Positions 1-25,200 are shown, numbered from the stretch's first letter. The stretch: 64,000 bases of DNA from Lepidodermella squamata (GCA_047495785.1 JBLDXI010000009.1:2046001-2110000), one strand, 5' to 3'. Numbers and translations: made by a program. Notes: a model not told the origin generated them from the sequence alone.

Positions 1-1393
1 GCGACGGATACCCAGGATCAAGCTGATATCTCGAGTCAAAAGCCAGTGCATACCGAGGAGCCCGTTGTGCCTCTAACAACGGAAGCCCAAAACACATTTC
101 CGCAAATTAACGGTAGCCGTCATGTAATTGTCGAGAATATTCTGGCGAGCGACGAGCACCCTGTTAACTCGGGACCTGTTGAGGCGATAATCGAGACCGC
201 TAAAGCAATGCCCGCCGTTCAAGTTCGTAAGGTCGAGGACTGGCGAGAAAAAGCACGCGCGATCGCTACCCGCATCAACCAACAAATCGATCATGAAAAA
301 CCAACAGCCGAGGAAGCGAAGCCACAACTCGTGGAAGACACGATTCGCAACCGAATCAAACGAACCGTTGTCCAGAAGCCTATTGAAGAATCTTCGGTGC
401 CTGACTTTGTTCGCAAAGCTAGAGCGATGTCTCAAACTGCTGCTTCGAAAATTGCTCAAAATGGCAACTTGATTGAATCACACCCGCCTAAGTAAGATAT
501 TGTCATTATAGTTGAAATTTACAATTTTGTTATTTTAAATCAGGGTTGTCGACAGGCCCGTTGAAAATGTTGCCCACGAGGTCATCGAATTCCCTAGCTT
601 TGCCACAAACGGGCATGTTAACGAAAACCTTGTTCAAGGAAGCGCGGAAGCTGCAATCGAACCTGCCATTACAGTTGCTGCAGGTGTTACGGTTTCTGCT
701 GCGCCTTCTATTCCTCCTCAAGCAATAGAGGAGCGGCCAAAGTCGACATCAACGGAGTCGTCTGAATTGAGCAGCCATCAAGATTCGGCTGTTGAAAACC
801 ATCCAGAAGACGAGGAAAATTCTGGTAGCGAAAAGTTGAAGCACGAATGGATGATGCGTGCCGCCAAGATTAAGGCAGCTATTCCGAGCATGCTGGACGA
901 GAAAACTGAATTGAAGCGCGAAGCTATGGCGCTGATTCGAGAGCAACACAAGCAAAGCCGTAGCTTGGTTTCTCAACTGGCGAAGACACCAACTCAAAAA
1001 ACGGTCCAAGCTTCCATCCAACAAAAACGAAACGCTTACAAGCAATTCGCCGCTGCACCCTCACAAGTTCGCGATACCTGGTTGCCTAAGCCTGAACCAA
1101 TTGGTAAGATATTTAATTAATTTTGGTCGACCCCATCTAAAGTTTTCCCGTACAGAGAGCGGTTTTGACGTTGTTCCGAAGAATCGCAGTGGTTCCTCTG
1201 CATCTTCATCCCCTGATGGTTCTCAGGTCTTCCGTTCAAAATGTAAGACATGACAAAACATTGATCGCTCATGCTTATTTTTTTCTTGATAGCAAATGTG
1301 TCTCAGCAAGAAAACGGCTACGACAAGGCTCGTTCCGGACTTTTGGATGAGCACCGAAACCAAAACGTCTTAAACGGAGCCGAGAACCACTGA
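1..1393 (+). CDS. 3' part of an unidentified multi-exon gene (low-complexity, partly coiled-coil); 5' end lies outside the window
   Basis: Open exons 1-~490, ~544-1102, ~1156-1241, ~1293-1393 joined by ~50-nt GT-AG introns; frame ends ...NVLNGAENH* (TGA 1391-1393). No family motif recognised. Confidence 0.6.
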
Positions 1394-18322: not shown

Positions 18323-20567
18323 ATGCAGGCTGGCTCATATTATCGAACCTCGGACCACATTAACAACTTCAAAATTAGGTATTTGAATTCCATCGTCTGA
18401 AATTTGTCATTTTATATCACTTTCATGCAGAGTAAAATTATGGCGCGCCTCATCAAATGTTCCTGGGCTAAGTTCCTTTGACACTTCATCGGAAGCATCA
18501 GTGACCAGTCCATCAAAATCAACTGACGTTGAGGAATATACCTTCTCATGGCAGGAGAAAATATTTTCTCAGGTACCAATAAGCCACTTAAATTTCTCTC
18601 TTTCATATACAATCTCCGGTTACAGCGAGAGATCGACTACTACCGAGTCACAAGGGAATATACCGTACCTATCGAAATGAAATATCATGACGACGTCCTG
18701 AAGCTTACGTATGTTTTTTTTTATTTTTTTTAATGCTAATTTAATTGATTAATCGTTAATTACAATCAGGAAGAACCTATCTTCATACCCGAAGTTTTTA
18801 TTCACCTACGTCGAAGCCGATGTCAATCGTCCCAATCCATCAGTAAATATGATTTATTAAAGTCTGAATATTCGTGACCGCTCCATTTTTAGTTAACCAA
18901 ACCGACAACTACTGACTTTATTCATCCTGCATTGGCTCAGCGTGAGGCTCTATCATCCCAGATTAAGAGTCATCCTGGATTTCACAGCTCCGCTGCTAGT
19001 CGTATTCGGCCCTTTGGGGACGGAGAATTTGGTGGAACTATACGACACAGAGGACGGGTCGTTGAATTCGAGCCATCACCCGAATTCAAAAGCAAGCGTT
19101 CACATGTATTGGGTACATTCCAAACAATGTACATCATGGCTGATGTCACCCGGTCCAAATCTACCGAAACGAAAACGGAAAATTCAACAGCTGATGCCGA
19201 GGAGAACAAAGAGAATGAAAATAAATCCCCACACTCGCCAAAAGCCAAGCCAGCAGAATCGGAAAAGTCTGATTCTTCAGAAGTGCTTCTGTGTATGATT
19301 CGTTACGATTCAACTTCTGGTTTGCTCATAATGAAGCCTGATTTTAACGGAAATCGAGAGCCATACGACATATCAGCCACCAGTCATTCGGATTCGTTTC
19401 AATACCGAATTATTCACAGCTCGAATCAAATGACGGCTCAAGATCGTGAGCGGGATAGACAAACTTTGTCCTTGGTTGATGCTCAAAGGGCAAACCTCTT
19501 ACGTGCATCTGTCGGTCCCGATTTCGAAATAGTAAGTTCACTCTCTTAATGCATATGATTTCGGTTTTATCCTAATTTTATTATTAGCCTTATCGAGACG
19601 TGTTTCGACTCGTGGCGTTCGGAGAAATCCTAACGGCTACAGACTTTGAATACGATAGCGTCTACGTGCAACATTCATGGGACTTACCGTCAATGTGGAG
19701 CTTGGCTCCTCGATGCCCATCAGGTGGTGTTACTCAACGTTGCGCAAGAACGTTGATAGGTACCTTGACATTTCTTTTTCTTGATATCATTTATTGCTTC
19801 TTTTTATAGACGATCACTACGTTGCGTTTTTCTCTTCTCCCATTGAGCTCGATGCTTTCTATAACTGCACAGCAGACTTCGACAAATCTGTCATTCGATT
19901 TCCATCATTATTAGTTCACGTTGCTTCGATGGATTCTTGGAACCGAGTCAGAACTGAAGGTTATGGCTACGTTGACGTCCCTTTCGAATGTGGCGTCCAC
20001 GAGTTGGAAATTAACTGTTGGCGTCCCGTTGGTCGGTCTATGTTTGATGAAATGCGCCGTTTCTTTATCGGCGCCACACCCGAAGTAGAGGACATGACAT
20101 ACGCACGGGTCCCTTCCTCGTTTCAAGGAAACCGATTATCTCGTTTGGGATTTCGAGTTCAATCGACAGGTAAAGTGAAGGTTCGATTGCATGTAATGCA
20201 ACAGGCGGGTGAATCTGGGGGCGCGGCTGCTGAATTTATGCATCAAATTACGGGCAGGCCTCAAATGGGCTTCATTCCAGATAGTCAAATGGCTGCACGA
20301 ATGACTCAACGTGGTCTAACAGGCCTCAGTGCTCTTTCACAAGCAGTGCAAGCCGTTCTTGAAGGCTATCAAAAAGCCAAGGAAAAGCTCGCCGCTGCCA
20401 GAGAGGGTCTTCCAGGCCATTTACGGGCCTTATTAATGCTGTCTGCAACTGAGGGACCTCAGCAGTCCCAACTTGCCTCGGCGGCGTCAGCAGTAATTTC
20501 GAGTCGAATGGCTGCAACCAATCGATTTATTGCCGAGCGAGTCCGAGCTCAAGCCAAAAAAGAATGA
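18323..20567 (+). CDS. MKS1: MKS1 transition-zone B9/C2 protein
   Basis: N-terminal YYRTSDHINNFKI, FSWQEKIFSQ, FQTMYIMAD; B9 domain GEILTATDFEYD...SMDSWNRVRTEGYGY...CWRP...RRFFIG. Confidence 0.9.
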
Positions 20568-20699
20568 CGAACTTGTTACTCACTGTTTATGTTATAATCA
20601 ATCACCATGTTGCAGTTATTTGTTACAGTTCATATCACTCGTATTCGATGCTCAAAGCAATAAAACATCAGTTTACAGAAAGGATTTTTGTTGAACATC

Positions 20700-21309
20700 A
20701 TGAGACCTAACAACATAATAGCCGTATTAGTTATATTTATTTCTCGGGTGGCAGGTAATATAATATTATGCAAGGTTTAGTATTTCAGATTTTTCATGTT
20801 GAAGGCTTCCAAATCAACTTCGAGAAAGGTCGATGGTGCTACGGGTGCCTTGGCACAGTTGAAGCTTGTCAAATTTCTCAGCCTGGAATTTGCCCCGTCA
20901 ACAAGCCGTATTGTCTGGTGGGGGTTTTAATCGGGCAGTAATTTTTAACATTTTTAATTTATTATGTCCTCAGTTTTCCTTCAATCGCTTTACTGGCATG
21001 GTAATTCAACATTGCGCCGATCTGGACACCTGTGGTTTGCCTCGTATGAAACGAAGCATCAATACGTATTTCGATCCTCGCAAAGCGGTCATGAATTGCT
21101 GCAATTACGATCACTGTGAGAAATTTCACAAGATAGGTATCTGTGTAATTTATTGCCAATTTTGCAATCTAATAGGTAACTGTATTGGGGTTCAATGCAA
21201 GCCTCTTCCCGGTGCCTGGGCGTCAACGTTAAGGAACAAGAAGTACCATTACATTTATGTTTGCTCATTTTTGGCTTATGTTTTACGTTTGTTGATGACA
21301 CATTTTTAA
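20700..21309 (+). CDS. Ly6/uPAR three-finger protein, paralogue 1, probably GPI-anchored
   Basis: Four exons: signal peptide MRPNNIIAVLVIFISRVA; WCYGCLGTVEACQISQPGICPVNKPYCL; FSFNRFTGMVIQHCADLDTCGLPRMKRSINTYFDPRKAVMNCCNYDH; CNCIGVQCKP plus hydrophobic tail. LU cysteine spacing and CCxxxxCN present. Confidence 0.82.
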
Positions 21310-21481
21310 AATGAACCTGCAATAAATTGACCGACTTGGAGGCCAATCACGAGTTTTATTCGACACGTGCGGCTCTGAACAGTCGCGTGTCTCAGGATTC
21401 CAAGGTCTACGGACGAGTAGCTGTAAACATTTTTTGCGAACTTACACAAACTCACCTTAACTTCAAAATATCAAAAATACC

Positions 21482-22145
21482 ATGCTAATGCACGCTACGA
21501 ACAATCAGATCTTTTCCTTGTTCCTAATTTTATCTTTTTGGCATCTCTCAGGTAAGTTGGCGAAAAATTAAGGAAGAAATACAGATTTGATTTTTTTATT
21601 GATAAGACGCGATTTCCTGTTACGATTGCCACGGAGCAATAACTTTATGCTCGGAAAAGCGGCCAACCAGGATGTGTCCTGAAGACAAGCCGTACTGCAT
21701 GGTATGCTTTGATTAGTATTTAATTTCTCCTTCGTGTCACATCAAAATATTCAAGTTCTCTTGGAATCGCCGTTCTGGAATGGCTGCCCAAGGTTGCGGC
21801 GACTCTAATTTATGTGGCAATCCTCGAAACAAACGAGGCCTTTACTACCCCTACCCTCAGGAACAGTACGAAAGCATCCCGAACACTGACGAGGTGACTG
21901 ATTTTTTTCAGCTTTGTTTGACTGCTTCATTTTTTACTCCATTCGTTCTTAGATGATAAACTGCTGTAATTACGATTTTTGCAACTGCCTCGGTAAGCTT
22001 CTACTGTTTTGGGTCTAGTGGACATCTGACCGCAATTGATATATTTACAGGGAGCCAATGCAAACCCATCACAGGAACGACAACAAAACCAATGGCGACC
22101 TCCTTCATTTTCATCACTGTACTTGTTTGCTTCCTTATGAACTGA
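21482..22145 (+). CDS. Ly6/uPAR three-finger protein, paralogue 2, probably GPI-anchored
   Basis: Five exons: signal MLMHATNNQIFSLFLILSFWHLS; AISCYDCHGAITLCSEKRPTRMCPEDKPYCM; FSWNRRSGMAAQGCGDSNLCGNPRNKRGLYYPYPQEQYESIPNTDE; MINCCNYDFCNCL; GSQCKPITGTTTKPMATSFIFITVLVCFLMN*. Absent from the ORF track because the exons are short. Confidence 0.85.
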
Positions 22146-22296
22146 CCGATATTCAATTTTTCTACCATTGATCTTATTTCCAACACATTTTATACATTGA
22201 CAAAATAAAAGAATGCTGAGCAATGTTCTATTTTATTCGAAAATTCACAGTGGTTCATCATAAAAAACGCCAGGAACCAAAACAACAACAAATTTT

Positions 22297-25200
22297 CTAG
22301 AGATAGAGACTGGCGGCGAAAACAATATCTCGCTTAAGCAGCCGAATCGCCTCGGAAAACTTGTCCTCCAAGTCGACGGAGCCGATCGCACGGGCAGCTA
22401 GACACATCTCGCGTAGAGTTTCCTCAAGTTGTCGCATGCATCTCACAATTCCACCTTCGAAAAAGTCGGACATTTTGCACAGCTGGGAGAAAGACGCGCC
22501 TTGACACCAAGCGTGGACCAGTGCCATAGTATAAGGCCGATATTGCTCGACGTACTCGTCTTCGTCACAATCTTCCAAGGCTTTACATTCCTTCATTAGC
22601 TTGGCGACTTTACGGGCAGTTTCTTGAAGATGACGTAAACTGGTCGAAAGGGCGTCGCTCAATTTCGGCATTTCATTGCCTTTCTCTTCGGAGACAAGAC
22701 AGCTTAACAGAGCCGCACATTCAGCCGGCGTCAATTTATTGAATTCACCACCAAGTAGAAGTTCGGTCATCATCAACTCATCGGCACAGCTCACTTCACA
22801 AGCAACCCGGCCTTTTGTTTCGATGATATCTGTCGCACTGATGTAACCCAGTCGACGCAGGACTCGCTTCATAGCTTTAAGCTGAGTCAAATGAAGTAGG
22901 GAACAGCGACGCTTCAATTCAGCCTTGCAATTTCTCAACTCCGCAGCGAGTTGCTGCTTCTTTTCGTAAGACGTGAGAAGAGTTGGTAAATTATTCGACC
23001 CGCTGAGAGGGTGTTTCGGCAACAAAGTGTCGACTACCTTCAGCTGTTGCATCAGGTCCTTAAACTTCTGATCTTTGATTTGCATATCTTCCTCCGGGTC
23101 GATCATAGGAAGACCGGCCGGGAAACGCTGTTCGACCTCCAGAACAAGCTTATTGACAGCTTCGCGCGCTTCCAATTGCCTAACATCTCGAGGTAGGTAC
23201 AAGCGAATCGCACTGACCTCGCTGATGAGGTCATGAGTAACCGGAACCACGACAGTTTCGCCATCCGAAGACGTTGTCGCACAAGGCGTGATTAGCTTGA
23301 TATCCCGCATTTGAACGCTGGCTTTCGAAATTCGAAGCAAAACTTCGATTACATAGGTTGGGCTATCTTCACGCGCCCCTTTCGGCTTTCTCGTATTTTC
23401 ATCGATTTGACGCTTTGTGAAGTTGACAACAGGTCCCCACCCGAAGTCCTGGCCGTCACGAACAACGTGAAGCAGACGACCCGGTTGGAGGAATGGCAAC
23501 AAATATTGCGGTTTGTGGATGAAATTTTTAATCTCTGCTCTCAGTTTCGAAGACTGCTGTTTAAGATCCCAATATGAGGCAACGTCAACCTCGTTCGCAA
23601 CCTCGAGAGATTTGTATCTCTGCTCCAACTCCGCAAGTTTCGCATATGCCTCGGGTAAAGTCGAGTAGTTCTGGAACTGGAAAAACGATTTTTCCATCAT
23701 ATACTCCGGGTTGATCTCTTCGACTCGAAGCAAGTTCAATATCATGTTGTAGGTCAAACGGAAAGCAGAATTTAGAGGGTCCGGTTGGCCTTTGATGATC
23801 TGCTTGCAAGCGGCAGGGCTGATGTTGTCCTCTATCATCATAATTACAATACCACGCTCGTCAATGCCACGGCGACCGGCTCTGAAATTCATCAATTAAT
23901 CAATCGCCGATACTTATTCACGTGTAAAACGAACCTTCCAGACATTTGAATGTATTCTCCCGATGTAATATAGCGGAAATTTTTGCCGTCAAATTTACGA
24001 TTGCTGGTGTAAAGTACAGTTCTGGCGGGCATGTTCAGACCCTGAAAATAGCATTTTGAAATTATCGAACTTGATAAAATACCCGATGGCTTACCATAGC
24101 AAAGGTTTCAGTAGCGAAAAGTACTTTGATCAAGCCTTCTTGGAACAAAATCTCAATGGTCTCTTTCAGTAAAGGTAGAAGACCCGAGTGATGGATGCCA
24201 ACACCACGCCGCAGGAAAGGCAGAACACTTTCGATTTGAGGCAGCTTTTTATCTTCATCGCTCAGGGTTCCAACGGCGTTTTCGAAAATCTAAATGGCAT
24301 ATTATTAAAAATTATTAGGAAGAAAACTGGGAAATTACCTCAGTAACCAATGCCTTCTCTTCGTCGGAATTAAAATCCATCTTTGCCGCTTCAATACCAT
24401 AAGCTTCACAATCTTTTCGGCTGAAGCTGAAAACGATGACCGGGGTCAAATCTCGCTCAGAAACCATTTTAACCAGTCGATAGCATCCACTTCCGCTACC
24501 TCCATGGCCAGCAGTCGCCTTCATACCACCCCGACGGCCAAAAGTATTAGGCCCAGCAGCACCCGCCAACTTTTGAAGTTCATTCATCGCTTGATTGAAA
24601 TTATCATCCAAGAATTCACCGCTCTCATTTACAACCAAAAAGGTTCCCTCAGCGCCGCTAGGATAGATGTAGTGCTGGAGGGGAGTGGGCCGGTACTCGG
24701 TATAGACGACGTGGCAAGGCTGGTGGTGGGTGTGAGCAATCCATTCAGCAAACTGAATCGCATTAGGAATAGTGGCACTCAAGAAGACGTAGCGAACACT
24801 ATCAGGCAGCAAAATGATGGTCTCCTCCCAGACAACACCTCGCTCCTTATCACGCATGTAGTGAATTTCGTCGAAAACGACCCAGGCGACTTCGCGCATA
24901 ATCTCAGAACCGCGATACAACATCGACCGCAAGATTTCGGTAGTCATCACAATGCAAGAAGCGTTCGGGTTGATCGTCACGTCGCCGGTCATCAGGCCGA
25001 CGTCTTGGAATTCTTCGTACAACTCTCGATATTTTTGATTGGACAAAGCCTTGATAGGCGATGTGTAAATTACTCGCTGTTTAGCACGAAGGGACATAGC
25101 TATGGCGTAAGTAGCAACCACGGTTTTACCGGCTGAGGTATGAGCAGATACTAGAACAGATTGCAAATTTTCCAGACATAAAATAGCTTCTTTCTGAAAC

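Follow-up and report, generated by a model that had tools for sequence, protein, structure and literature searches.

Positions 20700-22145 of the window (the whole 64,000-nt stretch of Lepidodermella squamata DNA that was analysed) contain two tandem spliced genes on the + strand, gene A followed by gene B. Their features are as follows.

20700-21309, + strand: gene A, LU-type, 147 aa, with exons 20700-20754, 20805-20917, 20974-21115 and 21176-21309.
20700-20754, + strand: exon 1 of gene A, a signal-peptide-like N-terminus with a phase-1 intron at its end; Kyte-Doolittle maximum over 9 residues 3.87.
21043-21054, + strand: R-M-K-R of gene A, residues 80-83, in finger III and in the K-R column of the subfamily described below; predicted cut after R83, before S-I-N.
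21181-21198, + strand: extra cysteine pair of gene A, C106-I-G-V-Q-C111, directly after CC-x4-CN; a subfamily hallmark.
21199-21306, + strand: C-terminal tail of gene A, a small-residue stretch P-G-A-W-A-S and then a moderately hydrophobic end; candidate GPI signal.
21482-22145, + strand: gene B, LU-type, 145 aa, with exons 21482-21551, 21607-21701, 21756-21893, 21953-21992 and 22051-22145.
21482-21551, + strand: exon 1 of gene B, a signal-peptide-like N-terminus with a phase-1 intron at its end; hydropathy maximum 2.71; splice confirmed by RNA.
21825-21836, + strand: R-N-K-R of gene B, residues 79-82, in finger III; predicted cut after R82, before G-L-Y.
21986-22061, + strand: extra cysteine pair of gene B, C113-L-G-S-Q-C118, interrupted by intron B4 (21993-22050).
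22062-22142, + strand: C-terminal tail of gene B, T-G-T-T-T-K-P-M-A-T-S and then a 12-residue hydrophobic end; candidate GPI signal.

Each of the seven introns in the two gene models has GT-AG ends, measures 50-60 nt and preserves the frame (50, 56 and 60 nt in gene A; 55, 54, 59 and 58 nt in gene B), and an AATAAA lies downstream of each gene, at 21321 for gene A and at 22204 for gene B. A and B are tandem duplicates, and the two adjacent paralogues translate as a preliminary description of this DNA had stated, with a hydrophobic N-terminus, ten cysteines of the Ly6/uPAR (LU) type and a hydrophobic C-terminus. The tail of gene B reaches a maximum hydropathy of 3.18 and has the layout found in other LU genes of the same genome; that of gene A is weaker (maximum 2.33) and contains Arg and His. 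Judged from their translations, the two genes would encode small secreted, probably GPI-anchored Ly6/uPAR three-finger proteins, the anchor signals being candidates.

The upstream neighbour is a gene for a B9-domain ciliary protein (19794-20564, + strand) and the downstream neighbour is the C-terminal part of an MTR4 helicase (22300-23895, - strand); with such a gene content the window must derive from a eukaryote that has cilia. The start codon of gene A lies only about 40 nt past the AATAAA (20659) of the B9-domain gene, an operon-like spacing (20567-20700); despite this spacing, RNA covers the B9-domain gene and not gene A. Intron A3 (21116-21175) is open in frame, and its retention would add 20 residues including three cysteines. 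A likeness to scorpion alpha-KTx toxins in a PDB sequence profile search (E = 0.07) aligned to residues derived from this intron in a read-through of gene A, and was therefore rejected as a coincidence.

The cysteine spacing is 2, 6, 7, 6, 14, 5, 21, 0, 4 and then N in gene A, and 2, 6, 8, 6, 14, 5, 29, 0, 4 and then N in gene B, and the order of the cysteines is that of the Pfam-recognised LU genes in the same genome. Both proteins have the CC-x4-CN end, followed by C-x-G-x-Q-C, a short small-residue stretch and the hydrophobic end. When an alignment of A and B was compared by hhalign with seven UPAR_LY6-type domains from the same genome, the score was 36.6 (probability 85%, E = 7e-7) with the cysteines in register, against a mean of 4.0 (sd 2.8, maximum 12.9) for 200 column shuffles of the A/B alignment; local mode gave the same picture. 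A half-domain HMM made from LU exons of the same genome gave a marginal result (3.6-4.3 bits, equalled by 9-10 of 500 shuffles), and Pfam returned no LU hit on single exons of A and B, pieces of 30-47 aa that are too short to expect one. The named Atlas neighbours of A and B are all LU families, at scores of only 0.81-0.85, so that they serve as a lead only. By sequence, we accept A and B as members of the LU family.

Six-frame searches of the genome gave 46 matches to QVR and 37 to UPAR_LY6. None of the 46 QVR (Sleepless-type, PF17064) matches is at the A/B locus, and the UPAR_LY6 six-frame search likewise misses it; the end motif is C-x-C-x3-LCN in the QVR-type genes and CC-x4-CN in A and B. 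The LYPD6-type model UPAR_LY6_2 (PF16975) matched the genome only once, weakly (C17, E = 0.02), and not at the A/B locus, and the Atlas resemblance of A and B to the LYPD6 type is only 0.81-0.83.

Transcription was assessed from run X1, which behaves as a transcriptome in that its contigs skip introns in both neighbouring genes. A check of the exons by RNA, proposed in the preliminary description, comes out for gene B, where transcript contigs skip exactly the four predicted introns (4/4), but not for gene A, which has zero X1 coverage (20708-21427). Gene A is silent or rare in the X1 sample. Its exon model is based on the parallel with its paralogue, on intact splice sites and on haplotype indels, since all three indels of gene A lie in predicted intron A1 and thereby support the model of its first intron. 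These come from a second haplotype, present in both runs, in which all five indels fall within predicted introns (A1, B2 and B3). All ten exonic haplotype differences in gene B are synonymous third-position changes, and its RNKR codons are identical in the second haplotype while the flanking codons carry synonymous changes. In gene A, two exonic differences are covered: a synonymous one and an A18T replacement in the signal peptide. For gene B the data show transcription, splicing at the predicted introns and purifying selection. At synonymous sites and within introns the two haplotypes differ by about 5% (21764-21896), and the same pair is present in two runs, one RNA-like and dated 2015, the other dated 2024 and assigned to a different organism code; the pattern looks like fixed heterozygosity, as expected of a clonal or parthenogenetic lineage.

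Weak exon-level matches inside the genome led to a subfamily that includes A and B; its members are recognised by the spacing C6-x5-C7, by a finger III that is long and hydrophilic, and by a tail of the form CC-x4-CN-C-x-G-x-Q-C. The second-half exons open with a block L-E-W-x3-T-x4-Q-x-C-A that is recognisable in A and B. At the DNA level the CC-x4-C-N-C pattern has 86 matches in the genome, against 22 for the reversed control; about 45-50 of the 86 were judged to be LU genes, an estimate made by eye with TGC-repeat noise discounted, and the CC-N-Y-D signature of A and B is common to about 15 of the CC-x4-C-N-C genes. LU genes with CC-x4-CN-C form tandem clusters on contigs C11, C13, C24, C29, C32 and C54. 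The subfamily counts given below rest on 14 members that were read, A and B included; further cluster members, for example at C32:2809-2816 kb and on C24, C29 and C54, stand outside these counts. The C-x-G-x-Q-C pair, which had been described as an addition in the two genes, is indeed present in both but is not peculiar to them, being a hallmark of the larger group. From these translations the subfamily is a lineage-specific, twelve-cysteine LU group with a putative sixth cysteine pair between CC-x4-CN and the candidate anchor signal.

Some members and relatives show features of their own. In L036 (G000:C13, locus 262-786, minus strand), a subfamily member with no dibasic site in finger III, both internal introns are open in frame, giving a 175-aa uninterrupted frame across the gene. 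Two stretches, G000:C11:1883844-1894070 and G000:C29:2710168-2717339, hold six LU genes each, ending CC-x4-CN-C-P, with nearly the same motif DNA in the same order; by their sequence these clusters look like duplicated or homeologous arrays. The one cysteine that the CC-x4-CN-C-P genes add after CN must have its partner elsewhere in the domain.

The loop between Cys7 and Cys8 contains G-L-P-R-M-K-R/S-I-N in gene A and G-N-P-R-N-K-R/G-L-Y in gene B, the slash marking the predicted cut. In both, the motif starts four residues after Cys7 and the P1 Arg stands seven residues after it. The two proteins are only about 41-43% identical, yet C-G-x-P-R-x-K-R is kept, with a synonymous change in the P4 Arg codon, and the claim that both paralogues carry R-x-K-R between Cys7 and Cys8 in spite of their divergence is borne out. 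What does not stand is the impression that a dibasic site in finger III belongs to these two genes: it is real in A and B, but it is common across the subfamily. A [KR]R pair is found in finger III of 9 of the 14 members, against 1 of 23 other LU second halves from the same genome (Fisher p = 1.4e-4), and in 8 of the 14 the P1 Arg lies 7-10 residues after Cys7, a number reached by none of 20,000 composition-preserving shuffles of the loops (mean 0.37, maximum 5); paralogues share ancestry, and these counts therefore measure conservation, not independent origins.

The sites at the shared offset are PRMKR/S, PRNKR/G, PTKR/E, ISKR/D, LSKR/Q, LKKR/Q, KKKR/S and ARKR/S, and a ninth site, LTKR/S, occurs later in the loop; beyond A and B, seven further members thus have K-R, KKR, KKKR or RKR. 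The P4 Arg that completes the full furin motif R-x-[KR]-R is present only in A and B, most members having a plain K-R. When homologues were examined for R-x-K-R, as had been suggested, the K/R-R pair was found to recur at the same offset across the subfamily and in one relative outside this genome (see below), but the full furin motif was restricted to A and B. Five of the 14 members have no basic pair in finger III, so that the fold can do without the feature, as can some functions at least. Finger III is 21-41 residues long in the subfamily and the remainder of the loop is barely alignable; with the K/R-R offset recurrent, this argues for selection acting on the site. Directly after the predicted cut stands a small or polar residue (S, G, E, D or Q at P1'), and the one that follows is often aliphatic (I, L, S or A at P2'); in A and B these two are a small and an aliphatic residue. 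[quoted passage not shown] The plain K-R would fit kexin/PC-type dibasic processing better than furin specifically.

Basic motifs in finger III were also seen in two LU genes outside the subfamily. L016 (G000:C60:350775-350882, minus strand) is an ordinary C6-x3-C7 gene whose finger III starts K-R-R-D-S-R-R; none of the other genes among the 23 non-subfamily LU genes read has a basic cluster. The R-V-K-R of L029 (G000:C13:1485475-1485753, minus strand), which is an LU gene of another type, stands in an extended finger III with extra cysteines and is possibly a second, independent furin-type motif in an LU finger.

Searches beyond this genome gave a word-indexed protein search with the contiguous 111-aa stretch of gene A that returned nothing, a HMMER profile search of 1.84 billion representatives with 0 hits at E <= 0.001 for A and B, scans of metagenome contigs, by the exon-2 profile and by the stretch from gene A, that also returned nothing, and PDB sequence profile searches with chance matches only. 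A and B themselves have no detectable orthologue in the collections searched by word search, by HMMER and among metagenome contigs. A profile of the second-half exons found one outside protein, P0001 (113 aa, E = 7e-15), encoded on the 626-nt locus L070 (ENA ERZ27282943, metagenome contig k141_1658587). The DNA of L070 has no near-identical match in this genome, and it therefore derives from another organism. Over its second half P0001 is 67% identical to L065+, and it keeps L-K-K-R-Q-A while the loop downstream differs. L070 has an intron after C-N-C-I-G as in gene B, the position of intron B4 being found also in L039 and L064, and lacks two upstream introns. P0001 matches the Pfam model UPAR_LY6 (PF00021) over positions 1-80 of 82 (E = 5e-5, 23.9-24.3 bits, cut-off 24.8), and its next-best Pfam matches are Toxin_TOLIP and CD59. 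An AlphaFold2 model of P0001:15-104 from an 11-row alignment (mean pLDDT 43.8, pTM 0.29, finger III 32-40) was of too low confidence for use. L070 indicates that relatives of this animal occur in environmental data.

The preliminary description had proposed that the site is cleaved by a furin-type protease. A and B match the furin-type substrate motif, and convertase genes are encoded in the genome, where the convertase P domain (P_proprotein, PF01483) has at least 10 matches, the best of 101 bits and all over the cut-off. Because an optimal furin-type motif stands in a proline-flanked long loop, and K-R recurs at the same offset across the subfamily, we consider convertase processing the best explanation, one that would yield a two-chain, disulfide-linked LU protein with an opened finger III; our confidence in it is about evenly balanced. 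A and B would enter the secretory pathway, and a kexin/furin-type convertase would cut after the second basic residue of the finger III site. The canonical LU disulfide map is 1-5, 2-3, 4-6, 7-8 and 9-10. Given the canonical Cys7-Cys8 pairing the two chains would stay joined, with the anchor carried by the C-terminal chain. Finger III would thus be opened into a free, flexible N-terminal arm, with a probable change in the binding of the finger. More tentatively, and with considerable doubt, we suggest that finger III could be a convertase-gated loop in which the cut switches partner binding on or off, A and B being tuned to furin-type constitutive convertases and the plain K-R members to neuroendocrine-type ones.

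Two further elements of the proposal as first made were not retained. Only in A and B would the cut expose an aromatic-rich N-terminus, the chains of other members starting ESLGR, DALGR, QIGR, SLG and so on, and nothing in the analysis points to a role as tethered ligand, channel modulator or gamete factor. Several observations also weigh against cleavage itself. Since the motif is near the finger III base, it could be hidden by a strand that packs on finger II, and most members, having K-R without the P4 Arg, are poor furin substrates. For gene A there are in addition the lack of RNA, the weakly hydrophobic tail and the one non-synonymous haplotype difference in the signal peptide.

The main rival explanation is that the basic pair remains uncut and acts as a conserved binding or structural determinant, for instance for an acidic partner or a membrane lipid, in an ordinary single-chain GPI-anchored LU modulator. 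We regard this as a real possibility, although not a probable one. Basic residues on finger loops are classic three-finger binding determinants, and the K+R content of the subfamily loops is raised (0.116 versus 0.068); moreover, the site is close to Cys7 and possibly in a strand, and the P4 Arg for efficient furin cleavage is absent from most members. However, what is kept is [KR]-R with a small or polar residue after it and, in many cases, an aliphatic residue next; this is the pattern of a convertase site and not that of a general basic patch, and it is kept in a loop that is otherwise free to vary. Prolines usually precede the site, which disfavours a regular strand. Should the site be uncut, the finding reduces to a new lineage-specific twelve-cysteine LU subfamily.

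Cleavage could instead serve removal or inactivation, finger III being trimmed or destabilised with turnover or shedding of function and no new binding surface. For gene A such a scheme is suggested by the R-K that follows R-M-K-R after 8 residues, so that a second cut could excise an octapeptide; for uPAR, it is established that a cut between the LU domains changes function. Gene B and most subfamily members, however, lack the second dibasic pair, and one fixed, conserved offset is more typical of constitutive maturation; we consider inactivation improbable. Least probable of all, and in our judgement very unlikely, is that R-x-K-R is a functionless neutral leftover in two recent duplicates, gene A perhaps being a silent, decaying copy, for although A and B are tandem duplicates, gene A is without RNA in X1 and no orthologues were found for comparison, this reading has to contend with a C-G-x-P-R-x-K-R kept at about 41-43% identity with a synonymous change of the P4 Arg codon, with the recurrence of K-R at this offset both in a second organism and in distant paralogues from other contigs, with clear purifying selection on gene B, and with a gene A whose frame, splice sites and cysteines are all intact.

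Convertase processing, if it occurs, would bear on how LU proteins are understood. Among the small modulators of receptors and channels in animals, LU and three-finger proteins are some of the most widespread, and the common view of them is of rigid single-chain domains, locked by disulfides, that bind partners directly through their fingers. That a convertase site in a finger has been kept through many duplications, and is present in at least two organisms, suggests a layer of regulation, namely proteolytic maturation of the binding finger. If true, this would be the first class of protease-matured three-finger proteins with the cut inside the fold, and it would offer a first way into the function of the LU repertoire, large and so far unstudied, of a neglected group of animals.

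Among known systems, A and B resemble CD59, Lynx1, Drosophila Sleepless/Quiver and other insect Ly6 proteins in having a putative signal peptide, a single ten-cysteine LU domain, CC-x4-CN and a candidate hydrophobic C-terminal signal, and they share with the CD59/Lynx1/Sleepless type the phase-1 intron after the signal-peptide segment, the mid-domain intron and the occurrence in large tandem families. Unlike these, the A/B subfamily has a sixth cysteine pair, C-x-G-x-Q-C, after CN, and a finger III of 21-41 residues with a conserved dibasic site inside it; its C6-x5-C7 gap also sets it apart from the ordinary LU genes of this genome, which have C6-x3-C7. In uPAR, which has three LU domains, the linker between D1 and D2 is cut by uPA and other proteases. 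It resembles the design proposed for A and B in being an LU-family protein with a GPI anchor, in which limited proteolysis at basic residues alters the function. However, uPAR is cut between domains by an extracellular protease and D1 is released, whereas in A and B a secretory-pathway convertase is proposed to cut within the disulfide-closed finger of one domain, with no fragment predicted to leave.

The preliminary description had not recognised the design among described LU proteins. This holds in so far as we found no description in the literature of a convertase cut inside an LU finger, a 2026 survey of invertebrate LU proteins being silent on cleavage, but there are precedents in the colubrid three-finger toxins and in glypican-3. 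Colubrid toxins have dibasic or tetrabasic propeptide sites attributed to furin/PACE-type processing (PMC12390062); these sites remove an N-terminal propeptide outside the fold of a secreted protein with no anchor, whereas the site of A and B is inside finger III. Glypican-3 and glypican-4 are GPI-anchored and are cut by convertases into two disulfide-linked subunits, and for glypican-3 this processing is required for function (PMC2173654). The glypicans are heparan-sulphate proteoglycans of unrelated fold and size, and their resemblance to the design proposed for A and B is one of mechanism only.
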